Of a stretch of DNA of 64,000 nt, positions 3,695 to 61,263 are shown piece by piece; the stretch's first letter is position 1, and each line of letters begins with the position of its first letter. The stretch lies in sequence record NC_061449.1, one strand, 5' to 3'. The notes beneath the pieces are model-generated. The model was not told the origin of the DNA, did no database searches, and worked only from the letters and a program-made list of their open reading frames with translations. The translations under genes were made by a program, and so were the position numbers.

Positions 3695-4516
3695 TTAATC
3701 ACCCACCGCAGTATACCAGAAGTCCCAGCCGGCAGTGTTTGTGCCAGTAGACTTGATGGTGAAACCACCTAACAAGGCGTTCTCATTCATCGCGCTCGTA
3801 CCATCCAGATTGTAGAGCTGGTAGGTCTTCGCTTGGTTGAGTGCAGCGTTCACGAAGGTAATCTGAATGCTGATACAACGGTTGATGAATGCCGTGTTGA
3901 ATACGACGTGAATAGTATCAGTAGTTGACGCGTTCACGACTCGACCCATGTTATGAGTAAAGCCAGTGTTCATATCGCGGTTACTACCAATCCACGCGTT
4001 AGGGATAACTGCACCGGTCACAGGGTTGAGTGCTTGTGATACACGATACTCGTCGATAGCTGCATCACGCCCAGGACTACCTGTAGGGCCAGTGGCACCT
4101 GTAGGGCCAACAGCACCCGTGTTACCAGTAGCGCCGACAGGTCCTGTATTACCAGTAGGTCCGTTACGACCGCGCGGGCCACGAGGACCCGGGCAGCCAT
4201 CTTCACCGTCACGACCATCACGTCCGTCAGCGCCAGGCAGACCACGCAGACCATCTTTACCCTGCTTACCTTCACGACCAGATTTAAGCTGGTCAGCAGT
4301 CGGAAGTCCTAAGACGCTAGACTGACTTCCATCAGGCCAGACGATAGTGAGAGTGCCTGTAGTTGTATCAAACTCAGCACCCTGAGAGCCGGGAATCTTT
4401 GCAGCCTCTGTTGGGTCTATGAACTCAACAGCGGACGCCGTCTTCTTACCTAACACCTTGCCGACGGGGTACGAGCCACCGTCGATAAGAGCAGGGCTAA
4501 TCTTCGTAAGAGACAT
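3695..4516 (-). CDS. collagen-like fibre protein with C-terminal gp53-like/H-lectin-like domain
   Basis: 273 aa; about 30 Gly-X-Y triplets; N-terminal FDTTTGTLTI..GLPT motif shared with three paralogues. Confidence 0.85.
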   Translation of the reverse strand: MSLTKISPALIDGGSYPVGKVLGKKTASAVEFIDPTEAAKIPGSQGAEFDTTTGTLTIVWPDGSQSSVLGLPTADQLKSGREGKQGKDGLRGLPGADGRDGRDGEDGCPGPRGPRGRNGPTGNTGPVGATGNTGAVGPTGATGPTGSPGRDAAIDEYRVSQALNPVTGAVIPNAWIGSNRDMNTGFTHNMGRVVNASTTDTIHVVFNTAFINRCISIQITFVNAALNQAKTYQLYNLDGTSAMNENALLGGFTIKSTGTNTAGWDFWYTAVGD

Positions 4517-9682: not shown

Positions 9683-10174
9683 TTAAGGACGGACCCAGAT
9701 GGCTCCGGGACTGATCTCTTGATCGATAGCAGGGTCAGTATCTTGCACGAAGACTTGTACTGTGCCTGGGTTACCCGGAGCGCCAGTAGGGCCAGTCGGA
9801 CCTGTAGGGCCAGCAGGACCACGATTGCCTACGTAACCTTGTTTGCCTTGCTGCCCATCAGTACCACGAGGACCCGGACAACCGTCTGTGCCTCGACGAC
9901 CATCATTACCCATCAGGCCGTCGATACCATCACGACCGGCAGGACCAACTCCACCAGCAGGACCGTAGCCAATGCTGTGAATAGTAGGCAGACCCGCGAT
10001 TTGCAGCTTGCCGATATTAGGGATATTGATTGCCAACACACCAGTAAGCGCATCGAACGCTCCGCTTAGAGTGCTATCGTCTTCTGACGTGTCAACAGTA
10101 ATACCACCTTGTGTCGCTACGACAGGACCAGAAGCATTGGCCCCGACGAGCGATATATCAACCTTAGATACCAT
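9683..10174 (-). CDS. collagen-like protein
   Basis: 163 aa; Gly-X-Y run containing GCPG; FDALTGVLAI..GLPT motif. Confidence 0.85.
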   Translation of the reverse strand: MVSKVDISLVGANASGPVVATQGGITVDTSEDDSTLSGAFDALTGVLAINIPNIGKLQIAGLPTIHSIGYGPAGGVGPAGRDGIDGLMGNDGRRGTDGCPGPRGTDGQQGKQGYVGNRGPAGPTGPTGPTGAPGNPGTVQVFVQDTDPAIDQEISPGAIWVRP

Positions 10175-10183
10175 GATTACTCC

Positions 10184-10816
10184 TTACGGCCAGGTTGTGC
10201 CTTGATCTTTTGTAGGGTCTACCCATATCGTCCCGGCTGCAACATTTCCGGGCTGGGTAGCACTCACAATAATAGACAGACGACCCGCAGGGCCCGCTGC
10301 GCCTGTAGGACCTGTAGGGCCTGTAGCGCCAGTTGCACCTGTAGGACCAGTGCCACCACGAGGACCAGTAGGCCCGGTAGGCCCCATAGGACCTGTTCGA
10401 CCGTCTGGTCCAGTAGGACCGACAGGACCGGGTAGACCATCACGTCCATCAGGACCGGGTAGACCCTGCTCACCGTCAGGACCGACGTCACCGTCACAAC
10501 CAGGCTCACCCGGATTACCATCTCGTCCATCGCGACCATCTTTACCATCAGCGCCTGTCTCACCTCTACTGCCCGGACGTCCCTCTGGAATATCAGACGC
10601 TGTAGGGAAACCGCCGACTTTTACTGTCTGTCCGTTAGCGAACTTGAGAGTAAGAATACCCGAAGTCGCATCGAACGATGAATCAGCAGTAAGCTCTGCG
10701 GGCACATCAGAATCAGCAGGGTCTATTGCAAGCACACCAGACTGAGCGCGAATCGCAGTAGCGGTGGTCGTCGAACCAGCCTGAATGAGACCGGTCTTAA
10801 CTTTAATCAGACTCAT
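10184..10816 (-). CDS. collagen-like protein
   Basis: 210 aa; about 33 Gly-X-Y triplets, GPT-rich; [14 protein letters not shown] motif. Confidence 0.85.
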
Positions 10817-12258
10817 TACTTTTTCTCCGCTTTCGCAACGATATCCGTGTTGTGTACGAGTACATCGCCGACGAAGTAACAGTCAAATGGATCGACGTCT
10901 ATATCGACTGTCTTCACATGAGCATCTACTCGGCGGAACTCGTAAATTGACACAGGTCCTTTGCGGCCTAAAACAGTTTGTCCTGCTTGAACATCACGCG
11001 CAGGAACATAGCGCCACACGCTGTCATCGTAAATCAAGACAGGGTGCTCGTGCGTGAACTTCTGACCGTTGATAACGAAGTAATGATCTTCTTCACCATA
11101 TTTAAGAGCAGTCACAGTAGCGTTTACCAGATTGCCTTTCAGACTCTGAGAAGACCACTGACGGAAGTTCTTCGGTTGATTAGAGAAGCCCAGCAGACTA
11201 TCACCGACGAGAACGTCTTCGACAGCTTTAGGTCCTGTAATCGTTTCTACCTCAGAACCAAACACGATACAACCAGAAGTTGCAGTGTTTGTAGGGTTAC
11301 GCGCTACGACTGTCAAAGCAGAACTCACAGTAACAGTTGGACGCGACGTTTGACCAAGGTCAGTTACTACGCAACGAATAGTGCCTTTGATTGTACGGTC
11401 AGCACCGAGTCCAAGACGCAGATAGAAGTTAACGATACACGTTGAGGATGTTGTAGCGTCAAGCGTTACACCCTCAGTAGTTGTGATAGACCACTGATAC
11501 TTATATGGGCCTACACCTCCACGCGCGTTAACAGGCAGATACGCAAGCGAAGTAAACACATCAGAACCCTGTACTGCACGTTGACCAACCATGTACAGAC
11601 TAGAGACTGACGCAGCAAGAGGTGTTATCGTAGGCAGAGGCGGAGCTGGGGTAACGTTGCTCGTAGGATATAACCAAACAAACACTTTACCGTCTGTAGG
11701 CTGTGTACTCGACAGCACGGCAGTGGTGATAGGCGCTGGTCCTGTAGGACCTGTTGCACCTGAGATACAGCTCGGACCATCGTTCCCACGAGGACCTATT
11801 GGACCCGTAGGACCCGTAGGACCATCTGGCCCCGTAGGACCGTCAGGACCCATGCGACCAGTATCGCCTGGAGGTCCGTCTTCACCGTCACGTCCAGGGT
11901 CACCTACAGGACCAGTCTTGCCTCTATTGCCAATCTTACCAGGACAGCCTTGACGACCTGTTTCACCGTCACGACCATCTCGTCCATCACGACCGGGAGA
12001 ACCCGGAGCGCCTCGACGCCCAGGTTTCCCTTCGCCAAACATAGCGATTGTCGGGAGTCCGGGAACGTTTATCACATCCCCGTTCTTCTTGATGAACACT
12101 AACACACCTGTCTTGCTGTTAAATCTTACGCTTGCGAGTTGTGTAAGAGCAGCAGTATCAGAGGATTCGAACTGAGCGCTACCACCAACACCAACCAGCG
12201 ACTTACCTTCATCGTTGGCGGTTGTTTCGATTTGCGAAAGTTTTAACTGTGTTGTCAT
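10816..12258 (-). CDS. collagen-like fibre protein with Ig-like domain and C-terminal Hint domain
   Basis: 480 aa; Gly-X-Y region, Ig-like segment, then CIVFGSEV...FTHEHPV...[10 protein letters not shown]|T. Confidence 0.85.
10849..11271 (-). other. Hint (intein-like) autoprocessing domain, 141 aa, no endonuclease
   Basis: Cys1 (res 330), block-B T-x-x-H (THEH), block-F D (VDIDV), terminal His-Asn followed by Thr+1. Confidence 0.85.
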
Positions 12259-28069: not shown

Positions 28070-28858
28070 TTAGTTCAGGTTGATTGTCTGTCCATTTACA
28101 GTTACTTCCTGACCTGCATCAATGCTAACAGCACCTTTAACATCAAGCACGTCATCGCCTTTAATTTTGGTAACGCGACTGCCTCCTATCTCAACAGTCT
28201 GGTTGCCTGTGATCTTCGTATACTGATTGCCACCGTCACCCTTAGGCGTACCTTTAAACTTGACACGCTTCTTCGGGTCAGGCTTGAGATTCTTAGGCGT
28301 CATCGTAGGGTCATTCAGAATGTAGTCGGGAATATCATTCTTCGTGCCTGTGATAATCAACTGTTGGTTGCCAACAATCGTCTGGTTAACATCACCCATG
28401 ATTGTCATGTGGAAGTCACCCGACGTAACGAGGAAATGCTCGTTAGTCATGCGGTCGATAATCAACTGCGTACCAGTAGATAGTCTGACGCCTATGCGAT
28501 GCGGATAGTTAACGAGAAACTCAGGCAGAATGTCTGCTTTCGTCATACGCACGTTCGTTGTGTACATACCCTCATGCAGTTGGCCAGTAGGGAACTTAAC
28601 ACTTACCTTAGCACCGCGAGTAGGGATGAATGACGTACCAAACACAACGCCAGTTGAACCACCTTTCAGCCCTTCGAGATGACCGACAGCAGGACGAATC
28701 CACGGAATCATCTCGTCGGCTATGTCATCCGTCAGTCCCATGACACGAGCACGAATCTGACCTATTTGCTGAGGATCGTTATTGTCTATAACGATTGCCT
28801 CATACTCCATTTGAGGGTCAATGCCCTTCTTGGAGTTAACTGTATTGAGTGGAATCAT
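28070..28858 (-). CDS. baseplate spike (gp5/gpV-like: OB fold plus beta-helix, no lysozyme domain)
   Basis: VIDNNDPQQIGQIRARV..L..IPW..P..GAKVSVKF..G; C-terminal 8-residue beta-helix repeats. Confidence 0.9.
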   Translation of the reverse strand: MIPLNTVNSKKGIDPQMEYEAIVIDNNDPQQIGQIRARVMGLTDDIADEMIPWIRPAVGHLEGLKGGSTGVVFGTSFIPTRGAKVSVKFPTGQLHEGMYTTNVRMTKADILPEFLVNYPHRIGVRLSTGTQLIIDRMTNEHFLVTSGDFHMTIMGDVNQTIVGNQQLIITGTKNDIPDYILNDPTMTPKNLKPDPKKRVKFKGTPKGDGGNQYTKITGNQTVEIGGSRVTKIKGDDVLDVKGAVSIDAGQEVTVNGQTINLN

Positions 28859-30750
28859 TTGTTCACCCGTGGTAAATACATTTCAAGTTTCTCACCGTCA
28901 GGCGTACCGTGCTTGCTTGAGCCATCGACAGTACCGTCACCGAGAGAGCACAAGAAGTTACGCAGGTTCTCTTCCTGTTGACGAATGAGTTGCGCTAGGT
29001 TAGTGCTCGGACCCAACAGCTTACTGATAGACAGTGCATCGAGGCACTTGTCAGGCAGAGCATCAGTCAGCATACGGTTCATATCGTCGATCTTATTCGA
29101 GACACAACGCTGATTGATTTGAGGACCATCAAGATACTCTGCGGGAATATCACCGTTAGCTATCAGGCTGTTCACGTCACTGGTGAATCCACCGAGCATA
29201 TTTTCCATAGCATCTATGCGCGAAGCGAGGCTACCGAGTATGCTGCCTTTATAGTTGATTGCCAGATTGACACTCAGCTTCTCAAGGCTGTTCAACGCGT
29301 TGCAGATACCAGTCAGGTACTTGGCCATGTTGAACTCTTGCATCAGGCTATTCAGATAGTCAGCACCTTCACCGTACTTAGCAGCCAACTCAGGGAACTT
29401 GAACATCTCGCTATCAGTCTGGAACTGGTCGAGCATCACATCAAGCTGTAGGTTGTGTTGCTGTGCAATCCAGTCGATAGGGTTCGAACCGTCGAGCGCC
29501 TGTTTGATGTTAGCGTTAATCTGGAACGGACGCAGCACGTTAGCGACAGTAGACAGTGGCGTCTGAATGATGTTTGCGCCACCGCCGATGTTTGACGTAC
29601 CTTCTACAGGGGTGAAGTTGCGGCTAAGCAGAAACGCTTCACTGTACATTCCACCGACGAACACGCGAGTACGACCAATGACAAGCCACTTGCCTGATAC
29701 CTTGATATCGGTCTCAACCTGACGCTGACCGTTGATAACACCGGCAGACACATCAACAATATCGAACAAGTCTACTTCTGGGCAGCCGCCGAGTATAAGT
29801 GCGCGGGCAGTCTCTGTGTACGTCATCGATTGACGTTTGTTCGAGTAGAACGCATGAAGATATTTATCGTGCAGGTTAATATCATTCGAGGGCCGAGCAT
29901 ACTGCTTGCGCGTACCTGCAATATCACCGCGAGTGTCACTGTTAATGTTCAGAGGGTCCGTGCTCTTAACAGACACGGACGAAAGCTCATTGGTTTTTCC
30001 CTCAGAGTCTGTCCACAGTAACTTCTCACCGTAGTTCGACATGCCATTGAACACACCGCTCATGGACTTAGGACGAAACTCATGCAGGTTATACAGAGGA
30101 CTATCGCCTGTCGGTTTGTGGTTGAACAGCCAGTATGCTTTCGGGTCGCTCTCGAATAGCTTGTTAATGTCACGCACCACCATGCGCTTATCGGCAGTGA
30201 TAAACATCTTAGGCAGCGCTTCTTCGGACACCCACATGTGCTGTTCGATTTCATGCGCGAACTTCTTCGGACTACACGCAGCAGACACCCAGCTCATTAT
30301 GTCTGAGGTCTGTATGTCTCCGAAGTCTGGTGTTAGACCGCCGAACGATGCAACTTGTTTGAGGGCATCGATAGAAGTACCGCGTATGCTAAAACTGCGG
30401 GTATCGAAGATGAAGGTGGGTGCGTCGAGAATACACAGCACATTAAGCATTGGTGTATTACCTTCACCGTACTCCCTTACTGCGAAGACAGAGAACGTAA
30501 GCGTTGACGCTGATTCTTGATCAGGGCCCATCACCATAGTTATCTTAGTGCCGTCTACAATCGCGTGGGTGGATCGTAGTACGTTCGTCTGGTCGGAGAA
30601 TACGATCAGAGCGCAGGGTACAGCAAAGGTGTTTTCGTAGACGTGAACAGAACGAATCAAGTTAGGCATAGACGGCGGTGCTTTGCCGTCTAACAGTAGC
30701 CCAAAATAACCTTGATCCTTCACGCCACCAGAAGATGCGTGATCAGACAT
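28855..30750 (-). CDS. baseplate hub / tail protein (gp27/VgrG N-terminal-like) with helical C-terminal extension
   Basis: 631 aa; directly upstream of the spike gene; SGKWLVIGRTRVF..GMYSEAFLLSR hub-like end. Confidence 0.7.
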   Translation of the reverse strand: MSDHASSGGVKDQGYFGLLLDGKAPPSMPNLIRSVHVYENTFAVPCALIVFSDQTNVLRSTHAIVDGTKITMVMGPDQESASTLTFSVFAVREYGEGNTPMLNVLCILDAPTFIFDTRSFSIRGTSIDALKQVASFGGLTPDFGDIQTSDIMSWVSAACSPKKFAHEIEQHMWVSEEALPKMFITADKRMVVRDINKLFESDPKAYWLFNHKPTGDSPLYNLHEFRPKSMSGVFNGMSNYGEKLLWTDSEGKTNELSSVSVKSTDPLNINSDTRGDIAGTRKQYARPSNDINLHDKYLHAFYSNKRQSMTYTETARALILGGCPEVDLFDIVDVSAGVINGQRQVETDIKVSGKWLVIGRTRVFVGGMYSEAFLLSRNFTPVEGTSNIGGGANIIQTPLSTVANVLRPFQINANIKQALDGSNPIDWIAQQHNLQLDVMLDQFQTDSEMFKFPELAAKYGEGADYLNSLMQEFNMAKYLTGICNALNSLEKLSVNLAINYKGSILGSLASRIDAMENMLGGFTSDVNSLIANGDIPAEYLDGPQINQRCVSNKIDDMNRMLTDALPDKCLDALSISKLLGPSTNLAQLIRQQEENLRNFLCSLGDGTVDGSSKHGTPDGEKLEMYLPRVNK

Positions 30751-41524: not shown

Positions 41525-42622
41525 TTAGCCACGGACGGCTTTCGCCACGGAACGCACGTTCGCCAGAGTGAAGGAGAAGGTGCTAGACAGCAACCAACCG
41601 CGGTCGGTGTTGCCCTGGTTCGCGCCGGAAGTCGGGGTAGACTGGGTGCCGCCACGAGTGGTGTACACTGCGTGGTAGTCCTGGTCGGCCAGAACATACA
41701 GTTCGCCGTCCTGCAGAACGCGGTGCTCTGGAGCGCGGAAGCCGTCAGTTACCAGTTCCAGACCCAGCAGAGTACCCAGACGACCAGTAGTGATCAGGTC
41801 GTATTTGCTTACCGGGTCCAGAGCAGAGGAGAACTGATCGTTACCAACGATATCGTTCCAGTAGTCCTGCGCCATCACAGCGGTGCTGACAGGCAGCGGC
41901 CATGAAGACACAGAATTTTTCAGAGTGGACAGCAGACGCGGAGTCAGGTCGCCGTGTACCCAGGTGATAGGGTTAGCGATGCCAACAGCCTGATCACAAG
42001 CGCGTTTCCACAGACGGTCTTCTGCAACCATGATAGAAGACAGGCCGTCTTGCTGTGCGCGATCCAGCAGGTCGCCGTTGATCTGATCCAGATCCATTTT
42101 GCTAACGCGGATGTTGGATTTCAGTTCGAACTCAGCAGGCGTGAACACACGACCGCGGAACTGACGGTAACCGTAGTCGGTAGGACCGGTTGCCATGATC
42201 GCTTCTGCCTGGTGGATTTTCAGTTCGATACGAGCGATATCGCCCTGACGAACAGTAGCGCCTTTACACACTTTGCGCAGCAGGCCAGCACGTTCAGCAC
42301 GGTCTTCGATAGATGCAACGATGGATGCACCCAGAGAAGCCCACTTCTCACCGCTGCTATCAGCAACAGCTTCCTGGAACAGCTCGATCTTCTCAGCTTC
42401 TGTCAGCGGGTTCGAAGCAGAGGTAGAGTGAACCAGTTCGCCGGTCTGGAAGCTGTTCATCAGCTTGCTGATTTGACCCAGCAGATCTTTTTGCGAGTAG
42501 GCGTTGATTTCGCCGGTGCTTTCGCTCAGTGCCAGATCACCTTTCCCGCCAAAACGCAGGTCTTCGATAGGTGCACCAGTACGCAGAGTTACTTTAGCGC
42601 CGCGCATTAAGGAATTGTTCAT
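41525..42622 (-). CDS. major capsid protein (HK97 fold)
   Basis: 365 aa; very strong codon bias; follows the scaffold and decoration genes; FELKSNIRVSKMDL..I.GDLL, G.LGTLLGLELVTD pattern. Confidence 0.85.
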   Translation of the reverse strand: MNNSLMRGAKVTLRTGAPIEDLRFGGKGDLALSESTGEINAYSQKDLLGQISKLMNSFQTGELVHSTSASNPLTEAEKIELFQEAVADSSGEKWASLGASIVASIEDRAERAGLLRKVCKGATVRQGDIARIELKIHQAEAIMATGPTDYGYRQFRGRVFTPAEFELKSNIRVSKMDLDQINGDLLDRAQQDGLSSIMVAEDRLWKRACDQAVGIANPITWVHGDLTPRLLSTLKNSVSSWPLPVSTAVMAQDYWNDIVGNDQFSSALDPVSKYDLITTGRLGTLLGLELVTDGFRAPEHRVLQDGELYVLADQDYHAVYTTRGGTQSTPTSGANQGNTDRGWLLSSTFSFTLANVRSVAKAVRG

Positions 42623-45550: not shown

Positions 45551-46684
45551 TTAAATTTTTCTGCTATCAATGTCAGTTTGTGGAATATATCTGTTTTCGA
45601 AGTATTTCGCTACTACCTCGACGCCGTTTAGCGTATAAACGTTGCGTAAGCTATATCCCCAAACCATCAGTTCAGCAAGCGTTGCGAAGTGCTCTGCGGG
45701 TACTGATTTAATGGTCAACGCGTTCATAGAATCCGGGTGGATTTTCTTGCCGCGAATGGCCTGATCAAACTTCATGCGTTCTACGTTACGTAGCATCGTA
45801 TGGTCCACAAAGTGGGCTAATTCATGCGTAATAACGTGCGCCATACTCAGGCTATTATAGCCGCCGAGTAGCTGCACTAACTGTGCAGGATGGATTGATA
45901 TCGCACCGTACAGGAAACCGTGTACGCGGTATGTTGCAATGTGACTACCACCACTATCCGAGTTAGCTTTCAGCAGGCCAACATACAGACGTTTGAATGG
46001 TAGTTCAAAGTTCAGGCCGATGCCGGGCATAACGTTTTCCTGAATATCTTTAAGTACATAGTCAGGAGGGCTAATACCGTTCTTCTCAAGCGTGACACCA
46101 GGAACACGCAAGTCATCCATGCCCAATATTTCGAGATGCACACGACCACACTTAGGAACAGGCTTGACAGCGTAGTTATTGGGCGTACCACCAGGATATA
46201 TTGCTGGTGCGTACTGCAATGGTTTGAAATTACCAAAATCAGGCATATCCATTAGACGACGCTGTGCAGCTTTCATCGAGTCAGGAGTGTCTTCGCCTGG
46301 GCGATCGTCATTCCCCGTTGCCAATGGCTTAGGTTTAGACTCAGGCTCTGGTGATTTCTCAAGTTTAACAGGCTTTGGTTCTGGTGCTGGTGGCGCAGGC
46401 TTCTTCTGCTTCTCCTCGTAAGGAGTGAAGTCGAAGTCCGGCTTAAAGAGAGCGTCAGGTTTCGCAGTGAATGGGCGACTGTTCTGAACGAGCTTGTCAC
46501 CGTCTTCTCCACTGATTGCATATGCCTGATCGTATTTAGGATGGGCAATGTAGTACAGGTCATCGCTTACTTTGAGAAGGCCAATGACCTCACGCGATTC
46601 CATATGGACACCGTTTGAGATCATTGCCGCCTGACCCAGATAGCGATAGTACGTGTAGTCCCCTATAGCTAAACCTTCTGGCAT
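45551..46684 (-). CDS. HExxH zinc metallopeptidase-like protein
   Basis: Start ATG 46684 (TGATG overlap, AAGGA RBS); VITHELAHFVDH...EHFA; Pro/Lys-rich linker; N-terminal shared domain. Confidence 0.75.
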   Translation of the reverse strand: MPEGLAIGDYTYYRYLGQAAMISNGVHMESREVIGLLKVSDDLYYIAHPKYDQAYAISGEDGDKLVQNSRPFTAKPDALFKPDFDFTPYEEKQKKPAPPAPEPKPVKLEKSPEPESKPKPLATGNDDRPGEDTPDSMKAAQRRLMDMPDFGNFKPLQYAPAIYPGGTPNNYAVKPVPKCGRVHLEILGMDDLRVPGVTLEKNGISPPDYVLKDIQENVMPGIGLNFELPFKRLYVGLLKANSDSGGSHIATYRVHGFLYGAISIHPAQLVQLLGGYNSLSMAHVITHELAHFVDHTMLRNVERMKFDQAIRGKKIHPDSMNALTIKSVPAEHFATLAELMVWGYSLRNVYTLNGVEVVAKYFENRYIPQTDIDSRKI

Positions 46685-47463
46685 CAGGCCATCCTTAATA
46701 GATGTTCTTTGTACGTTGCAGCACACGCGAACGCTGGGTCATCCACGCTACTACATTCGAAGCCGGTAAGCATCTTACAGTCACGATACACCAGACGGCC
46801 TGTACGCGCATCGAGATAGGTCGGTTTGTTGAACGCTGTGTGCGAACAGAAGTTACGCATCTTAGGCGTTACCAACTGACCGCAGATACTGCACTTATAA
46901 GCACGATACGTTGTGCCTTTGCTGTACGTGTTCAACTCACCACTCAGGATTCGGTCGCAGCGCTCTTTACAACGCGTACGGTCGAATGCCAGCAGCAACG
47001 TCAGACGAGCGTGGTCGCCACGGAAGTTCTTGAGCTTGGACAGGTTGCTGTCGAAGATCATACCCATGGCCTGACGGTAGTCTTTATTGTTGTGCTCGAT
47101 GAACGTCGGCTTACCAATGAACGTCTGATAAGCAAGACGACCTTGGTCAGGGTTGAACGTTAACCACTCTTGCAGACTAAACGCATCACCGTTAGTGTTC
47201 GGCAGCTCAGTGATGTTCACCGGAACAGGAACGATGATATAGTCGCGGATATCGCGTGACGTGTTATACTGCTCGGCTGCTTTCGGCAACCACACGTTCA
47301 CATCAAGGTTAAAGGAGCCTGTCTGAATACCGAAGCGAGAAGCATCCACACGAATAGATTTAGCTGTACGGCTAACATCTTCCTTGTGCATGTCAATCGC
47401 GTTCAATCCGACGAGGCCCATGTCTGACGTATCAAACGATTCAGACTTTACTGACTGGGTCAT
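46684..47463 (-). CDS. prohead (capsid maturation) serine protease-like protein
   Basis: Start ATG 47463 (GGAG RBS); PNTNGDAF, GKPTFIEH, YSKG..CSICG pattern; synteny protease-scaffold-MCP. Confidence 0.7.
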   Translation of the reverse strand: MTQSVKSESFDTSDMGLVGLNAIDMHKEDVSRTAKSIRVDASRFGIQTGSFNLDVNVWLPKAAEQYNTSRDIRDYIIVPVPVNITELPNTNGDAFSLQEWLTFNPDQGRLAYQTFIGKPTFIEHNNKDYRQAMGMIFDSNLSKLKNFRGDHARLTLLLAFDRTRCKERCDRILSGELNTYSKGTTYRAYKCSICGQLVTPKMRNFCSHTAFNKPTYLDARTGRLVYRDCKMLTGFECSSVDDPAFACAATYKEHLLRMA

Positions 47464-47897: not shown

Positions 47898-48776
47898 TTA
47901 ACCTCGCAGAGCACCACGAGCCCATGACTTAGCGAGGGCCAGAGTCATACGAGCAGGGTTGTGCAACTTGACTTCACCTTTATGGACGGCAGTGAATGGT
48001 TCATGCGCGTTCTCACTGCGGCCCGAGCGATATGCGGCTTCGTTGAAACCATCGAACAGAGTAACTACCCAGCCAGTAGATTTCTCAGAGCACTCACCAC
48101 ACGCTTTATCCCACGCAATCTTACCGCAAACACGACCACCAGCATTAACTGCATAACTGATTTGCTCAGTGCCTTTATAAATGTCAGGCGACTTGATGGT
48201 CTTGAAGGTGACACGCGACGCAGACTCAGAGCGAGGAATCATCTTCTCTTTCAGAGTTTCAACATCCAGTGATGACCAGAAAGATTCAAACAGTGCTGCA
48301 AACTTCTGTTCGATAGGAAGATTGATAGCGTTGATTTGCGCGATGGTGCTGGAGCTATCGTTGAGTACTCGGTTGATAAAATACCCGCCGATAATCACAG
48401 GCATCTGTGTCCCCTGCGAGCCCGCCGTCAGACCAGACTTCTTGCAGTAGATTTCAGACAGGCCGATAGCCAGACGCGCAAGAGTCATGAACGTCTGCTT
48501 CTCGGTCGAGTTAGCGATCTCTGTGTAGATACGCGCAGCGATAGCAGGGACAACAGTACGCTTTGCTACACTCAGAATATCTTCTGGTGTGATTGACTGG
48601 CCGAGCTTCTTACGCGCAGCCAGTTCGAAGGCGTTAATCAGGCTTGCTTTGTTCGCTGGCGTCAGCGACTCCCCTAACTTGATAGTCGTCTGCTCGGAGC
48701 TGCTCACTATGTTCGGAGCTGGAGCTGTCTTGAGTCTTTTCACTCCCGACGTTGACTTCATTCGCTGTACTGTCAT
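47898..48776 (-). CDS. hypothetical protein, probable head protein
   Basis: 292 aa; AGGA RBS; MKSTSG, IVSSSE and PRSESA motifs. Confidence 0.75.
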   Translation of the reverse strand: MTVQRMKSTSGVKRLKTAPAPNIVSSSEQTTIKLGESLTPANKASLINAFELAARKKLGQSITPEDILSVAKRTVVPAIAARIYTEIANSTEKQTFMTLARLAIGLSEIYCKKSGLTAGSQGTQMPVIIGGYFINRVLNDSSSTIAQINAINLPIEQKFAALFESFWSSLDVETLKEKMIPRSESASRVTFKTIKSPDIYKGTEQISYAVNAGGRVCGKIAWDKACGECSEKSTGWVVTLFDGFNEAAYRSGRSENAHEPFTAVHKGEVKLHNPARMTLALAKSWARGALRG

Positions 48777-49881
48777 TTGTTTGTTCCTGAGTAACAGGCT
48801 GCATGTGACTCAACAGCCCAGAGTTCTGAATTGCCTCATTCAAATCTTCACCACGATGAATGGTGAGTTGAGCGAGGTAGTTGAGAGCAGGTTCAACCAT
48901 ACCGAGATTACGACAGCCCCAATAAGCTGTTTCGTAACATAGGTCTAAATTAATAGAGGTCTGGTCAAACAAGAAACTTTTTGGATTCTGCTTGGCTGCA
49001 TCAATACCCTGAATAGCCATGCCTGTAGCATTGATCATATCGTCGTGACGATAGAAAATGTCGGCGAGCATCGCATAGCACTCAATGCGATCAGGGCGGA
49101 ACGCTACCGCACGATAACAGGCAGCAATCGCTTCCTGTGTGAACCCCTGCTTGAATGTCGCTTTCGCCAGCTCGATGTTAGCGATAGCAACATAGTCAGC
49201 CCAGCGAGCAATGCCAGCAAGACGATCTACTTCACGACGAGCATCGTCCAGCAGGTCAGCACGTTCGTTATAGCTTACCGCATAGCAGAGTTCACGCGCA
49301 TAGTAGAAGCTGCAACGATCATCGTGCGGGTAATCACCCACATCCTTACCAAGCTCAAGCAGATAACCGCGAGGCTTCGTGTGGTCAGGGTAGTGGTCAG
49401 TTGCAAACGGCGCCTCGATGGTACGCAGGTTCTGGCCAGGCTTACGAGAAGACAGGACTTCATGAGCACGATACTTCCAGAAGTAAGAGCGACGACGATA
49501 CGCTTTCATCTGCTGGTAGTGACTATCACCGTTGCGCATCAGAATCCAAACTGCTTCGGCATGTTTAATGTGCTTCGTGTTGCGTAGCGTTTCAACCCAA
49601 TTAGGGTCATCGAAACGTTCGTCGATATCGAGCCACACAACGAGATCATCTTCGGAGAATGGCGTAGCGGCCAGTTCACGACTCGCGCCCAGATTACGTT
49701 CTTCTGACACGTCGAACATATGATACAGGTTAGGGTGCGTGAACGCAGAGATGATGTTTGTGGTTTGGTCTTCGCTGCCCGTGTCTACGATACTGATTGC
49801 ATCAGCACCAGCAACGTGTTCCAACCACTCACGCATATTCTTTTCTTCATTGCGACAGATAGCCGCTACGCAAATTCTCAT
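48634..49881 (-). CDS. GT2-family glycosyltransferase with TPR repeats
   Basis: AICRNEEKNM, IVDTGSEDQT, WLDIDERF (DxD), HEVL, DHYPDH; TPR-like helices in the C-terminal half. Confidence 0.9.
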   Translation of the reverse strand: MRICVAAICRNEEKNMREWLEHVAGADAISIVDTGSEDQTTNIISAFTHPNLYHMFDVSEERNLGASRELAATPFSEDDLVVWLDIDERFDDPNWVETLRNTKHIKHAEAVWILMRNGDSHYQQMKAYRRRSYFWKYRAHEVLSSRKPGQNLRTIEAPFATDHYPDHTKPRGYLLELGKDVGDYPHDDRCSFYYARELCYAVSYNERADLLDDARREVDRLAGIARWADYVAIANIELAKATFKQGFTQEAIAACYRAVAFRPDRIECYAMLADIFYRHDDMINATGMAIQGIDAAKQNPKSFLFDQTSINLDLCYETAYWGCRNLGMVEPALNYLAQLTIHRGEDLNEAIQNSGLLSHMQPVTQEQTNDSTANEVNVGSEKTQDSSSSEHSEQLRADDYQVRGVADASEQSKPD

Positions 49882-49897
49882 ACATGCCTCATTTGGG

Positions 49898-50815
49898 TTA
49901 TACTAAAATGTTACCACTATCCCACCACTGCTTGCCGTAAATATCAGACAGGCGATAGTCAAGGATGAGTGGCTGGTCAAGGTCGACTTGCGTTATGTTA
50001 CGCCCTAAAGCAGGACTCCAGACTGTTTTCTCCTCAGTGTAGAGTCTTATCTCAAGTTCAATGTCGCCTTGTGAGTTCTTCGGCACAAACGGATGTGAGT
50101 AGTCACCATCAAAGCCCACACCGAGCGAGTCATCGAAGTAAGTGTACGCACGGATTTCTTCCGCACTATTAATGATTGTAGGCGCGTACACCTGACGGTT
50201 GTAGTAGGAAGTGTAATCAGCAATGGTTGATTGCATGACAACACGGCGCTTGTAGATTCGCGTTACACCTTTGCTGTCAGTCTCTGCGCGATACTGGTTG
50301 TAGTACCAACTTATTTGCGCAAACTTAACAGGCTTCAATTGCTCTTGGCCCGAAGCGTACTTCATGAAAGGCTTCGCAGTAAAACGGTGGTACGTCTTCT
50401 GCGTGTTCAATCTGTACACCAACATCTGATACGTATACCACTGGTATATATCAAGGGTAATCGTACCGCTATCGGATTGCTGCGTACCGTTAGTCAGGAT
50501 GTAAGCGAAACAGTCAGCGCCAACATAACCGCTTCGTGGACTGTAGATAAACGCGTCGTTGAATGTGTTCAATCGCACAGTGCCTACCATAGGGTCATTG
50601 ACCTTAATAGCAGAAAGGCGCCAACCCCTTTGAGCTGGCACCTTATCAAGCACACCCTCAGTCGGGCTATGCAATGTCACTTCGTCACGAGCGCCTTGTA
50701 AGATCTTTTCGAGCGTTATCTCAGTTTCACCTGAGTTACGCACTCGCACAGTCAAGTTCGGAGCCAGCGGTTTGTAGTTACGCCAGTAGTCGAACGTACA
50801 AGGCAAAGAGAGCAT
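49898..50815 (-). CDS. virion protein with Big_9/cadherin-like Ig domain
   Basis: P..GTVRLN..NDAFIYSPRSGYVGADCFAYILTNG...S..GTITL; start ATG 50815 with GGAG RBS. Confidence 0.7.
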   Translation of the reverse strand: MLSLPCTFDYWRNYKPLAPNLTVRVRNSGETEITLEKILQGARDEVTLHSPTEGVLDKVPAQRGWRLSAIKVNDPMVGTVRLNTFNDAFIYSPRSGYVGADCFAYILTNGTQQSDSGTITLDIYQWYTYQMLVYRLNTQKTYHRFTAKPFMKYASGQEQLKPVKFAQISWYYNQYRAETDSKGVTRIYKRRVVMQSTIADYTSYYNRQVYAPTIINSAEEIRAYTYFDDSLGVGFDGDYSHPFVPKNSQGDIELEIRLYTEEKTVWSPALGRNITQVDLDQPLILDYRLSDIYGKQWWDSGNILV

Positions 50816-50817
50816 AA

Positions 50818-52764
50818 TCACTCCAGTTTGTATTTGCTCTTGAACTCCGCAATGCTCATAACAGGAATGCCCTTGTCAATCGCTTTCTGTAGCTTCGCGG
50901 AACCAGAGCCAGGGTCTTTAGCAATCAGAATCGACGTGTCTGCTTTCATGCCGTCAGAAGCAACGCCACCGAGTTCGACGATACGCTTCATCAGGTCACG
51001 ATCACGCACACCAGTGAACGCTACGTTAACGCCTTTGAGCTTGGAGCTAACCACTTTCACTTTCTTCGGTGCAACGAGAGTCACATCCATTTCAACTGCC
51101 ATGAGATAAGACTTAATCGCAGCGTCAGCAATCTGAGGCGCGAGCTTATCGACACCGTGCATACTGTTGATCTTGACAGTCAGGTCAGCAGTCTTTCCTT
51201 TCTTCAAATAAGATTCGAGGTTAGGCACGGCATCGACAACCTTATCGAACGTTGTGTTAGCACCGCGCATGAAGAATGAAGCAGTAGCTTTAAGCCACGT
51301 ATTCATCGGCACACCGGCTTTCAACGCTTTCAGATCTTTAGCCAACTGACGACCGCGAGAGTCACCAACGATTTCACGCAGTGTTGCCATAGGCGTCATG
51401 AACAGTTGCTGCGGTGTTTTGATACCAGAAGCAACGAGCAGCTTACACGTACTCGGTCCTGTGTTTGCAACGTCCAGCCCTTTCAAGAACGAGCCGAGCA
51501 TACGAGAGTCAGCAGCACTGGTCTTCGTCTTAGCAACGAACTCAACGCCATTGATCTTGTACTGTACGTCAGGCAGCTTAGGCTTCTTAGCAGGCTTGAG
51601 GATTTCCATGATGTACGGAATTACCTTGCCGCTTCGAATCAACTTAACCTTAGCGCCTGGACCAAGAGGTCGCTTAGGCCCCATGACAGCGCCTTTCTTC
51701 TTCGGCTTGAGATAGCCATGCTCAACGTAGAAGCCGTTGTGCGCAGAAGCACGTTCAACCGTAACACCACCGGGCATAACAGTCGGCGGGAAGATTGCAA
51801 CAGGAGCCAGCACACCGTACTTTGACTCTTGATAGATTACGTCTTTGACAGTCACTATAACAGTGTCCGACTCAACGTTCATCTTGAACTTGAAAGCGTG
51901 TTTAGGATTGCTCGCAGTAGCCTTCGGTGTAGGAACATCGCGGGTCATTACGATGCCGTCGAGTTCATACTTTGCCTTAGCGATGCGTTTGTCCAACCAC
52001 GGAATGAGTTCTTCTTCCGACTCAAAACGCATAGGGCCGAAGTGGCGAACTACTTCGAATCCCCATTTCTCTAACAGCTTGAACTGCGAAGACTGTTTGA
52101 GTGTAGCGCCTTTGCCTCCGATGATACCGAAGCACACCATGTGGACGTACTTGAACTCTTTCGCTGTTTCGAAGTTACGCACCAGACCTGACGCAGCATT
52201 ACGCGCAGCTTTGAAGCGGCCACCAGCAGATTCATGCAGCTTAGCCATAAAGGTCTTGTACGGAATCAGCGCTTCACAACGCAACACGACTTGACCCTTC
52301 TCAGAGATTTTCTGAGGGATACGCATAGCAGGTAAATGCTGGGACACGTCTTTACCGTGAGTAGCATCACCACGAGTAAGCGCACGAACAGGTACGCCTT
52401 TCTCGTAAACGATTTCAATACTCAGGCCATCGAGTTTATCAGTCAGAACCCAATCAACGTCTTCGGCAAGAGCTTTAGACAGTTGTTTGCCCCCCAGAAC
52501 GAACTGATCAAGACTTGCCATAGGTACAGGCAGCTTAACGTCCGAATCATCACGCGCACCGACTTTACGCGCCAGCTTAGACTTAGGCCAGCGCTTGTCG
52601 ATGTAGGTGCGGATGTAGTCGTACACAGCGTCCGATATCAGACCTTCTGAGTCAGTGTGAAACGCATCATCAAGATGCGCCACCAGCTTCGTCGCTTGAG
52701 TAAGATTAAGCGTGTCCAGAACCTTATCAGGATTCTTTTCAAGCCGCTTCAAAGAGATTTGCAT
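50818..52764 (-). CDS. ligA: NAD+-dependent DNA ligase
   Basis: ISDAVYD, PMASLD, KLDG, LTRGD..GKDV, ELDGIV, AFKF, OB fold, HhH, C-terminal BRCT; start ATG 52764 with GGAG RBS. Confidence 0.95.
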   Translation of the reverse strand: MQISLKRLEKNPDKVLDTLNLTQATKLVAHLDDAFHTDSEGLISDAVYDYIRTYIDKRWPKSKLARKVGARDDSDVKLPVPMASLDQFVLGGKQLSKALAEDVDWVLTDKLDGLSIEIVYEKGVPVRALTRGDATHGKDVSQHLPAMRIPQKISEKGQVVLRCEALIPYKTFMAKLHESAGGRFKAARNAASGLVRNFETAKEFKYVHMVCFGIIGGKGATLKQSSQFKLLEKWGFEVVRHFGPMRFESEEELIPWLDKRIAKAKYELDGIVMTRDVPTPKATASNPKHAFKFKMNVESDTVIVTVKDVIYQESKYGVLAPVAIFPPTVMPGGVTVERASAHNGFYVEHGYLKPKKKGAVMGPKRPLGPGAKVKLIRSGKVIPYIMEILKPAKKPKLPDVQYKINGVEFVAKTKTSAADSRMLGSFLKGLDVANTGPSTCKLLVASGIKTPQQLFMTPMATLREIVGDSRGRQLAKDLKALKAGVPMNTWLKATASFFMRGANTTFDKVVDAVPNLESYLKKGKTADLTVKINSMHGVDKLAPQIADAAIKSYLMAVEMDVTLVAPKKVKVVSSKLKGVNVAFTGVRDRDLMKRIVELGGVASDGMKADTSILIAKDPGSGSAKLQKAIDKGIPVMSIAEFKSKYKLE

Positions 52765-59076: not shown

Positions 59077-60258
59077 TTAGGCTCCGGCGCCTTCTTGGGC
59101 TTTATAGCCTTTTAAGAAGAAGATACGCATACCGGTGTTGTTCGGACTGTTAGCAGTCAGAGCTTTATAGGTACGCTTCTTCGGCGTGCTGCCGTCGTCT
59201 TCCGTTTCGTTATACACCTGCACGTCGATCTCAGTGCCGTTGGAGATAACGTCAGCAGATGCGTAGCCGACCATATCCATTTCGTACGGGTAGCTATAAC
59301 GCTGCGTGTTGAAGCCCGCAGGCAGACGGAAATCGAAGTGGTTATCTTCGGAGAACGGAACCATCTGATACGGGTTGATAACAGCAGAGCTATCCGCGCT
59401 GTGTACGTGAGCAGGTGCCGGAATAGTAGGAGCATTCACGTCAGACTCACGCACTGTATAACGCATGATCTGGAATGATCCCGGGCTGCTCGCTGCCGGA
59501 CGCACCTCAATGTCGTTGTTAATAGAGCCGCCGCCGTTTACAGAGAACATGCAGAACAGAGGAGCTTTCCCTTCAACAACAACGGTACCATCAGAGTTGA
59601 TAGCGCGTTGTACAACAAGCCACGCAGCGCGGCAGCCGTCGGAATCACGTCCTTCAACAGCGATATGCAGAGCAAAGCCGTGATCAGTGAAAGACAGATG
59701 GTACGTAAACGGAGTCGCTTCCGGGTCAGCCCAGATCAGGCTGTCGTTGTTGGTCTGTCCGGCAGTGTTGGTGGTGGCATTAGTTGGATATGCCATCGTG
59801 CCGCCGTAGTATACAGTGTTGCTTGGACCTGCGATACCACGATGGTAGAAGCATACGTCATTGTCACCAGCCGAACCGCCGTTGATGCCAGAGAAGCGAG
59901 CACCAATCTGACCTGCATACTCAGGAACGCCTGAGGACGTAATAGCAGCAGTGCCTGTTTTTGCCACAGTACCCGTGTCAGAAATCTGCTCAGGCGCAGC
60001 GCAGTATAGATTCGTGCGCTTCTCAGTACCCTTCATGGCGATACGCCAGCGCTGTTTACCTGCACCAGTACCGGCAAGCGGGTCGATGGTATTTGTCGCT
60101 TCCAGTACGAAAGACGAAAGATCAGTCGAAGGAAGAGTAGAAGCGATGGTGCCGTTATAGCTCACCAGAGAGAAGCCGTTAGCCATCATATCCTCTAGGA
60201 TAGAGCGCCACATTTTCAGGTTGCTGGTGAAGCCAGATTTCACAATCAGTTTGTTCAT
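59077..60258 (-). CDS. abundant virion appendage protein (paralogue A)
   Basis: 393 aa; strong codon bias; TDHGFALHI and YPYEMDMVGYASADV motifs shared with the neighbour. Confidence 0.7.
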   Translation of the reverse strand: MNKLIVKSGFTSNLKMWRSILEDMMANGFSLVSYNGTIASTLPSTDLSSFVLEATNTIDPLAGTGAGKQRWRIAMKGTEKRTNLYCAAPEQISDTGTVAKTGTAAITSSGVPEYAGQIGARFSGINGGSAGDNDVCFYHRGIAGPSNTVYYGGTMAYPTNATTNTAGQTNNDSLIWADPEATPFTYHLSFTDHGFALHIAVEGRDSDGCRAAWLVVQRAINSDGTVVVEGKAPLFCMFSVNGGGSINNDIEVRPAASSPGSFQIMRYTVRESDVNAPTIPAPAHVHSADSSAVINPYQMVPFSEDNHFDFRLPAGFNTQRYSYPYEMDMVGYASADVISNGTEIDVQVYNETEDDGSTPKKRTYKALTANSPNNTGMRIFFLKGYKAQEGAGA

Positions 60259-60276
60259 GAGCTGTTATCCCCTTAA

Positions 60277-61263
60277 TTAAGCAGTATCGCCCAGGCCGAT
60301 AGGAAGCATCAGACGCATACCACGGTTGTCTTTACCGTTAGCGTTCATGCCCAGGTATTTGGTTTTGTTTGCTGCTTTCAGAGGGTTCAACTGCACTTCG
60401 GAGCCGGCAGAGAGAACGTCAGCAGACGTATAGCCCAGCATGTCCAGTGTAGCGAAGTACACATAACGCTGAGTGTTGATCATCTGCGGGAACAGAACGA
60501 TAGCGCGGTTACCTTCTGCAATCATAACCTGCTGGAGCGGGTTGATGATTGGTGCAGAGTCAGGCGTAGGCTGCACAGCAGACAGCGGCGCCGTAGCTGA
60601 GTAAATACCATCTTCGATTACAGTGTAGCGCTGAATAGCATCAGCAGAGAACTTATCAGGGTCACCGGCAAGGCCGCCACCGCAAGAGAATACTGCAAAC
60701 AACGGACTCTGATCGCCTGGTTTAGAGTCTGTGGACTGGACGCCGCGCTGAACAACGAACCAGCTAAACGCAGTACCGGTATTATCGAAACCTTCTGCAT
60801 TGATATGCAGAGCGATACCGTGGTCGGTAGTGATGAAGTCATACGTCAGAGGGTACGCAGACACATCAGCAGTCGGGTCCATCTTCCAGTCGTTAGTCAG
60901 ATCGATGAAGAAGTTAGCAATCAAGCCAGACTTAGACATACGTCCGATTTCAACTGTAGCAGAGCGTTTCGCTGCGGTGTAATCGGTGGCGTTCACCTGA
61001 TTGTCAGGCAAAACATTCACAGCCAAAGTTTTAGCGGCGTTGTCCGCAGACAGCAGGATGCCCCACTTTTGGTTTTGATACAGAGGGTCAACCGCCTCAG
61101 ATGCCAGCAAATAGAAAGTCTTGCCAGTAGGTGTTACGGTAGTTCCTGTTTTGCCGTCAACAGCAACAAGCGAGAAGCCAGCAGTAATCATTTTGCCGAC
61201 GAGATCGCGAGTCAGGGCCTCAAGGCCTACGAGCTTAGTGGCGTTAATACGTTGAATAGCCAT
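60277..61263 (-). CDS. abundant virion appendage protein (paralogue B)
   Basis: 328 aa; TDHGIALHI and LDMLGYTSADV motifs. Confidence 0.7.
   Translation of the reverse strand: MAIQRINATKLVGLEALTRDLVGKMITAGFSLVAVDGKTGTTVTPTGKTFYLLASEAVDPLYQNQKWGILLSADNAAKTLAVNVLPDNQVNATDYTAAKRSATVEIGRMSKSGLIANFFIDLTNDWKMDPTADVSAYPLTYDFITTDHGIALHINAEGFDNTGTAFSWFVVQRGVQSTDSKPGDQSPLFAVFSCGGGLAGDPDKFSADAIQRYTVIEDGIYSATAPLSAVQPTPDSAPIINPLQQVMIAEGNRAIVLFPQMINTQRYVYFATLDMLGYTSADVLSAGSEVQLNPLKAANKTKYLGMNANGKDNRGMRLMLPIGLGDTA

Follow-up and report, generated by a model that had tools for sequence, protein, structure and literature searches.

The 64,000-nucleotide stretch analysed here (the window) is part of record NC_061449.1, the 263,916-bp genome of Erwinia phage pEa_SNUABM_17, a jumbo phage of fire blight in the genus Alexandravirus; window coordinates are record coordinates minus 62,000. 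On its minus strand, positions 48634-49881 hold an uninterrupted open reading frame (ORF) for a 415-amino-acid protein, gp144, which RefSeq names 'beta-1,4-glycosyltransferase'. The gene lies in a long minus-strand block of virion genes that includes head, prohead protease, tail sheath and baseplate functions, and the same block encodes four collagen-like proteins, gp100, gp104, gp105 and gp106. Judged by its sequence and its relatives in other phages and in bacteria, gp144 is very probably a protein glycosyltransferase belonging to a family associated with collagen-like proteins. We also lean, if only slightly, towards the four collagen-like fibres of this phage as its acceptors. Positions of all features are collected in Table 1.

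The N-terminal part of gp144 belongs to the GT2 glycosyltransferases. Pfam PF00535 (Glycos_transf_2) matches residues 5-126 with an E value of 6e-7 and a score of 29.9 bits (cut-off 23.3), and PHROG 13126 covers the protein from end to end. In a 21-homologue alignment the motifs DTGSxD (D33-D38), DxDE (D85, D87, E88) and HEVL (H140-L143) are invariant, as are H163, D166, K169 and R171, and for this reason the enzyme looks catalytically competent. The AlphaFold2 model has a mean predicted local distance difference test score (pLDDT) of 86.3 and consists of a GT-A domain (residues 1-170) followed by ten paired helices (residues 174-354). Its GT-A fold is modelled at a pLDDT above 90, matches GT-A enzymes and is not of the GT-B kind. 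No Pfam tetratricopeptide repeat (TPR) family matches gp144 at E≤0.01; consensus-TPR chains in the PDB match residues 236-286 with phmmer E values of 4e-8 to 1e-2. The original prediction of a GT2/TPR enzyme within the head and structural gene block is thus borne out, the GT2 part by a Pfam match above cut-off and the repeat by the PDB chains together with AlphaFold and Foldseek.

Among solved structures the top sequence match to gp144 is GmaR (phmmer E of 2.5e-8, in the glycosyltransferase domain), and the top full-length fold matches are SunS and ThuS (PDB 7msn and 7msk; Foldseek E of 2e-12, TM score ~0.5). GmaR is the flagellin O-GlcNAc transferase and MogR anti-repressor of Listeria monocytogenes (PMC9638930). 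It shares with gp144 the order of a GT2 domain and then a TPR domain, and it is a protein O-glycosyltransferase. However, GmaR has 637 amino acids with linker and anti-repressor domains and takes flagellin as its acceptor, whereas in gp144 only a disordered tail follows the TPR-like domain. SunS and ThuS, at ~420 amino acids, likewise combine a GT-A domain with a helical TPR-like domain and use peptide acceptors. They differ from gp144 in having no detectable sequence similarity to it (no phmmer match at E≤1) and in attaching S-linked sugars to the Cys of small helical precursors of bacteriocins; no glycocin locus was found either.

SgtA of Clostridioides difficile, a 358-amino-acid protein with a GT-A domain and four TPRs that is encoded beside bclA3, transfers beta-O-GlcNAc in vitro from UDP-N-acetylglucosamine (UDP-GlcNAc) to Thr in collagen peptides of BclA3, a protein of the spore exosporium (PMC7157674). 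Both SgtA and gp144 are described or predicted as soluble, metal-dependent enzymes with a GT-A domain and C-terminal TPRs, and the SgtA length, which is typical of many members of the gp144 family, compares with a folded core of ~360 amino acids in gp144. Unlike SgtA, which is a bacterial sporulation enzyme, gp144 is encoded by a phage, at a distance of 36 kb from the genes of its presumed substrates, and carries an additional 53-residue disordered tail. Because the nearest characterised relatives in sequence, fold or architecture (GmaR, SunS/ThuS and SgtA) are all protein or peptide glycosyltransferases and gp144 has no membrane segment (maximum 19-residue Kyte-Doolittle hydropathy of 0.97), a protein acceptor is indicated.

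No other GT2 match was found in the pEa_SNUABM_17 genome, nor any GT1-family enzyme, sugar epimerase or dehydratase, or sugar nucleotidyltransferase. The sole glycosyltransferase found in the genome is gp144. Since no genes for sugar conversion and activation were found, the enzyme must draw on a host nucleotide sugar, and the glycan that it adds is probably simple.

A six-frame scan for G-X-Y triplets recovered four collagen-like ORFs, all on the minus strand and each with 21-33 uninterrupted triplets. All four exceed the cut-off of the Pfam collagen family PF01391, whose only matches in the genome they are, and they match the NCBIfam models of Scl and Lcl. The number of collagen-like proteins originally predicted for the window is therefore correct, although their description as rich in Gly-Pro-Thr (GPT) has to be softened: GPT is present at a moderate level, making up 15 of the 107 triplets when the four proteins are pooled, and Thr occupies the Y position in 26 of the 107. 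Each collagen segment has a charged N-terminal half (GRDGRDG), and almost all of the Thr follows in its C-terminal half. The four proteins have a common N-terminal domain of ~75 residues. Each collagen segment has a single Cys at an X position (G-C-x-G), directly after the charged GRDGRDG run, and this Cys is kept in all four paralogues of phages PaBG and Lu11, some of which have a second one; it could form an interchain disulfide knot or serve as a modification site. In gp106 the C-terminal third, after the collagen and Ig-like parts, is a Hint/intein-like segment (C...VLVHNT).

The main indication of what gp144 acts on comes from the genes that accompany its relatives. The source phage falls in the 'hairy Myoviridae' group, the Alexandravirus lineage that also includes Y3, AD1, JA11/29, Yoloswag, PaBG and Lu11 (PMC6143709, PMC7412058). 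We fetched 80 loci encoding gp144 relatives from IMG/VR, 12 of which belong to this jumbo-phage clade and 68 of which lie outside it, and scored each for a collagen ORF with at least 8 G-X-Y triplets within 10 kb of the glycosyltransferase gene. Outside the clade such an ORF is present in 31 of the 68 loci, in most cases with the same orientation as the glycosyltransferase gene and often immediately next to it. After the enzymes were clustered at 50% identity, 18 of 42 viral lineages remain linked to collagen, compared with none of 120 random IMG/VR loci (978 kb, sampled by random 14-mers; Fisher p = 1e-12). Every other neighbour family occurs beside the viral enzyme in at most 6 of the 42 lineages. 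Several collagen-linked loci also carry terminase, portal and adaptor genes and hence are true tailed phages.

Another example outside the clade, found by tblastn, is the Actinomycetia phage DSL-LC01, in which two very GPT-rich collagen genes are followed by two genes and then by the glycosyltransferase gene; its product matches gp144 by BLASTP over residues 1-335 (E of 7e-21). Between the collagens and the glycosyltransferase of this phage (locus L011, 4433-6004, plus strand) lies a gene resembling flavin 'tryptophan halogenases', whose product could be a second fibre-modifying enzyme of DSL-LC01. We considered it as a conserved third partner and rejected it, as it does not recur in the other loci, where no family besides collagen exceeds 6 of 42 lineages.

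The closest cellular relatives, taken as the best 80 loci of a genome scan, are all from Bacillota, mostly Clostridia, and are 27-32% identical to gp144. A Thr-rich collagen ORF lies within 10 kb of the glycosyltransferase gene in 45 of the 79 closest loci. This 57% is an underestimate, because assemblies break at collagen repeats: at many bacterial loci (for example L354, L361, L366, L374, L377 and L378) the contig stops within a collagen repeat, only a few hundred bases away on the upstream side of the glycosyltransferase gene. In a common gut member of the family (P0072) the enzyme is encoded directly after a collagen protein of 1049 amino acids, and it matches gp144 by BLASTP over residues 1-346 (E of 3e-21). 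A homologue search with another bacterial member (P0051) returned more than 7,600 proteins from Clostridia. No record from C. difficile is among the best 80 bacterial loci of the genome scan. The gene for SgtA adjoins a collagen gene, as in the majority of bacterial relatives of gp144 and in many of those from phages. In a maximum-likelihood tree, collagen-linked members occupy all major branches, and the Lupandier (jumbo-phage) clade, with 99% support, is nested among collagen-linked clades.

The collagens found beside these enzymes differ from phage collagens at large. As a background we sampled 118 collagen-encoding IMG/VR loci by their periodic GG pattern; only 4 of them carry the glycosyltransferase within the fetched piece, so that most phage collagens are without it. 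The median fraction of triplets with Thr at Y is 0.50 for viral collagens linked to the enzyme (18 lineages) and 0.67 for the bacterial ones, against 0.12 in 111 loci without the enzyme (p = 4e-6). The link is specific to a Thr-rich subset of phage collagens, and it agrees with the acceptor of SgtA, which is Thr in G-x-T collagen repeats. This recurrence of the family beside Thr-rich collagen genes, in Bacillota as well as in phages that are not related, gives strong independent support to the view that gp144 acts on the collagen-like appendage proteins of its own phage.

We infer the acceptor proteins and the sugar of gp144 from these comparisons, and propose the following sequence of events. 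Late in infection gp144, a cytoplasmic, metal-dependent (DxD) GT-A enzyme of the SgtA-like GT2-TPR family, would take up a nucleotide sugar of the host; judging from SgtA and GmaR this is most plausibly UDP-GlcNAc, though it might be a UDP-hexose. With the acceptor protein held by the TPR-like domain, the sugar would be O-linked to Thr, and perhaps Ser, of G-P-T or G-x-T triplets, which are concentrated in the C-terminal halves of the collagen segments. The proteins gp100, gp104, gp105 and gp106 would receive it either ahead of the assembly of tail or baseplate fibres or while this proceeds. The benefit might be a more stable triple helix, shielding from proteases or defence systems, or contact with a receptor. 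Glycosylated collagens on biological surfaces have precedents: BclA of Bacillus anthracis forms a surface collagen-like filament with GPT repeats that carry O-glycans, and Mimivirus encodes collagen-like proteins together with a modifying enzyme, L230, that places glucose on hydroxylysine. The enzymes and linkages of both differ from the system proposed here.

Table 1. Positions of gp144, its domains, the collagen-like proteins and other genes in the window
Feature	Position in window	Strand	Basis
gp144, whole ORF including stop; soluble GT2-TPR glycosyltransferase	48634..49881	-	ORF translation, Pfam, PHROG, RefSeq, AlphaFold model, hydropathy
GT-A catalytic domain of gp144, residues 1-170	49372..49881	-	21-homologue alignment, Pfam PF00535, GmaR match to residues 5-106
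DxD metal and nucleotide-sugar motif (D85-I86-D87), invariant	49621..49629	-	21-homologue alignment
TPR-like helical repeat domain, residues 174-354, 10 helices; presumed to bind the acceptor protein	48820..49362	-	AlphaFold pLDDT >90; Foldseek and phmmer matches to consensus TPR, OGT TPR and GmaR TPR
Disordered C-terminal tail (residues 363-415), acidic and rich in Ser/Thr; differs among relatives, some of which lack it	48637..48795	-	pLDDT <50, alignment, composition
gp100, collagen-like fibre protein; collagen segment 4064-4279, 24 triplets, 7 with Thr at Y	3695..4516	-	Six-frame G-X-Y scan, Pfam, NCBIfam
gp104, collagen-like fibre protein; collagen segment 9758-9946, 21 triplets, 3 with Thr at Y	9683..10174	-	Six-frame G-X-Y scan, Pfam, NCBIfam
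gp105, collagen-like virion protein; segments 10277-10348 and 10358-10582, 33 triplets, 10 with Thr at Y, 6 GPT	10184..10816	-	Six-frame G-X-Y scan, Pfam, NCBIfam
gp106, collagen-like virion protein with C-terminal Hint-like domain; segment 11770-12030, 29 triplets, 6 with Thr at Y	10816..12258	-	Six-frame G-X-Y scan, Pfam, NCBIfam
Conserved G-C-x-G Cys (approximate)	4190-4198, 9875-9883, 10490-10498, 11945-11953	-	One per collagen segment
gp143 (PHROG 31537), conserved downstream neighbour, long ORF overlapping the 3' end of gp144; possible alternative substrate	47898..48776	-	PHROG, synteny
gp145 (PHROG 36743, Big_9 Ig-like domain), conserved upstream neighbour; possible alternative substrate	49898..50821	-	Pfam, PHROG, synteny
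Prohead protease	46684-47463	-	Same strand and block as gp144
Major head protein	41525-42622	-	Same strand and block as gp144
Tail sheath genes	59077-61263	-	Same strand and block as gp144

Several observations weigh against this proposal, most of them concerning the jumbo-phage clade itself. In gp144 the GT2 domain, the SgtA-like GT2-TPR architecture and full-length homology to the family are all present; however, its gene does not adjoin a collagen gene. The four collagen genes are 36 kb away, albeit in one block of virion genes with it and in the same orientation, the enzyme in this clade is encoded among head-morphogenesis genes, and no collagen gene lies within 10 kb of it in any of the 12 clade loci. 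In more than half of the viral lineages outside the clade, likewise, no collagen gene was seen within 10 kb, which is due in part to short flanks. Thr at Y reaches only ~0.25 in this phage (the 65th percentile of phage collagens) and ~0.17 in PaBG and Lu11, and individual Thr positions in the collagens are not conserved across PaBG and Lu11. The likeness of SgtA to gp144, moreover, is one of published architecture and size. The co-occurrence of enzyme and collagens, which the original prediction had offered as a check, is complete within the clade: PaBG and Lu11 each hold four collagen-like genes and a syntenic glycosyltransferase gene, and no relative has the collagens without the enzyme or the enzyme without the collagens. 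Because all of these records belong to one lineage, the pattern is phylogenetically non-independent and carries little weight alone. The prediction that the phage modifies its own collagen or other appendage proteins, rather than DNA or lipopolysaccharide (LPS), thus gains from the family-wide collagen link, from the protein glycosyltransferases among the relatives and from the lack of a membrane segment, and loses from the 36-kb distance and the modest share of Thr at Y.

The position of gp144 in the head module, so far from the fibres, makes other virion proteins plausible acceptors, among them gp143, the Ig-like gp145, capsid or decoration proteins, and the hairs attached to the sheath. The order ligase, gp145, glycosyltransferase, gp143, gp142, prohead protease is retained down to 27-44% identity of the enzyme, both in a metagenomic relative (44%) and in the most distant clade members, PaBG and Lu11 (~27-30%). 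The overlap of the gp144 and gp143 genes suggests translational coupling, and the collagens of this phage are only moderately rich in Thr. There is also a precedent, since phage glycosyltransferases modify the virion's own proteins in mycobacteriophages, at the C-termini of capsid and tail-tube subunits (Freeman 2023, as cited in PMC12619734). Phage virion glycosylation is a recent discovery, known so far only for these capsids and tail tubes; as in our proposal the phage enzyme acts on its own virion, although the acceptors given there are not collagen repeats. Even so, we regard such acceptors as unlikely for gp144, because collagen, and no head protein, is the family-wide neighbour. Homologues of gp143 or gp145 do not recur beside the enzyme outside the clade, and the Ser/Thr fraction of the two proteins, 0.15-0.18, is not notable. 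The same neighbourhoods bear on a role directed at the host, in which gp144 would modify flagellin or another surface protein in the manner of GmaR, or an envelope glycan such as LPS or amylovoran, and so contribute to takeover or superinfection exclusion. GmaR is indeed the top sequence match among solved structures, PHROG 841 (GtrB-like O-antigen conversion) gives a weak match limited to the glycosyltransferase core (E of 1.8e-5), and databases use the names 'beta-1,4-glycosyltransferase' and 'LOS glucosyltransferase'; NCBIfam adds only sub-threshold matches to polysaccharide glycosyltransferases. However, polyprenyl-phosphate GT2 enzymes of the GtrB/ArnC type have C-terminal transmembrane or interface helices, whereas gp144 has neither a transmembrane nor an amphipathic anchor of this kind. 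The Foldseek matches to ArnC, TarS and WrtF are ~7 orders of magnitude weaker than those to SunS/ThuS and cover only the GT-A core, the gene is in a late structural block, and the family is tied to collagen genes and not to envelope loci. A host target is therefore quite improbable.

Glycosylation of phage DNA at a hypermodified base, as protection from restriction, is less probable still. Phage glycosyltransferases often modify DNA (Pyle 2024, as cited in PMC12619734). In this genome an NAD-dependent DNA ligase is encoded two genes from gp144, and a thymidylate-synthase-family ORF (record positions 28198-29298, plus strand) is unusually long at ~366 amino acids and might be ThyA or a pyrimidine hydroxymethylase. 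The TPR domain nevertheless points to a protein acceptor, and the phage and bacterial relatives adjoin collagen genes instead of DNA-modification genes. The alpha- and beta-glucosyltransferases of T4, the classic DNA glycosyltransferases, are GT-B enzymes, whereas the fold of gp144 is GT-A. Finally, S-glycosylation of the conserved collagen Cys (G-C-x-G), or of a small peptide, by a glycocin-type enzyme has hardly any likelihood in our judgement. It is brought to mind by ThuS and SunS as the best full-length fold matches, by the one Cys that this phage, PaBG and Lu11 retain in each of their four paralogues, and by a slight enrichment of Cys in G-X-Y triplets among bacterial collagens linked to the enzyme (7 of 45, against 3 of 111 background loci; p = 0.007). 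Against this, such Cys is found in none of the 32 viral loci with linked collagens, SunS and ThuS have no match to gp144 at the sequence level, and the Cys could instead serve in an interchain disulfide knot.

Applied to phages generally, O-glycosylation of collagen by an SgtA-like enzyme could constitute a widespread and undescribed system. Tentatively, and at slightly less than an even chance, we suggest that SgtA-like GT2-TPR enzymes and Thr-rich collagen fibres form a virion O-glycosylation system in actinophages, in phages of Bacillota and in 'hairy' jumbo phages of Enterobacterales and Pseudomonas, and that in pEa_SNUABM_17 the O-linked sugars on four fibres set fibre stability, adsorption or evasion of attack by the host or from the environment. 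Our literature search found no paper that ties a phage glycosyltransferase to collagen-like fibres, or that joins phage, collagen-like, glycosyltransferase and TPR. Papers on the AD1/JA phages, on PaBG and on Alexandravirus, and a review of jumbo phages, mention no glycosylation, collagen or virion proteomics for this enzyme.

The proposal amounts to a transfer of SgtA-type collagen O-glycosylation to phage virions, and it replaces an uninformative name, 'beta-1,4-glycosyltransferase' or 'LOS glucosyltransferase', with a specific function that can be checked. If it is true, the mass, stability, antigenicity and receptor binding of such fibres could not be read from the gene alone, and recombinant fibres, or phages engineered for biocontrol of fire blight, could misbehave when the enzyme is left out. 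The pair of glycosyltransferase and collagen would also provide a simple two-gene model for glycosylation of the collagen triple helix without hydroxyproline.

Some further observations concern individual genes and records. RefSeq places gp143 at 47898-48488 (196 amino acids), while the alignment to PHROG 31537 spans residues 35-292 of a 292-amino-acid ORF, and the true start of gp143 is probably upstream of the RefSeq start. In the metagenomic relative whose enzyme is 44% identical, the gene downstream of the glycosyltransferase gene likewise overlaps it, by ~35 nucleotides. The N-terminal domain of the jumbo-lineage collagen fibres also occurs, at 54% identity, in the records of Salmonella phage Sen-NF (PV359490.1, 108 kb) and Alcaligenes phage Afa-NA1 (PV550095.1, 78 kb), and Sen-NF at least also has the glycosyltransferase, at 43% identity. 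These records, which are far below 250 kb and state different hosts, may be partial or mixed assemblies. A glycosyltransferase 78% identical to gp144 is encoded on a 13.9-kb contig (L348, JAVWLC010000025.1) of a metagenome-assembled genome labelled 'Raoultibacter sp.', and this contig is almost certainly from an Alexandravirus-like phage and mis-binned into the bacterial assembly.

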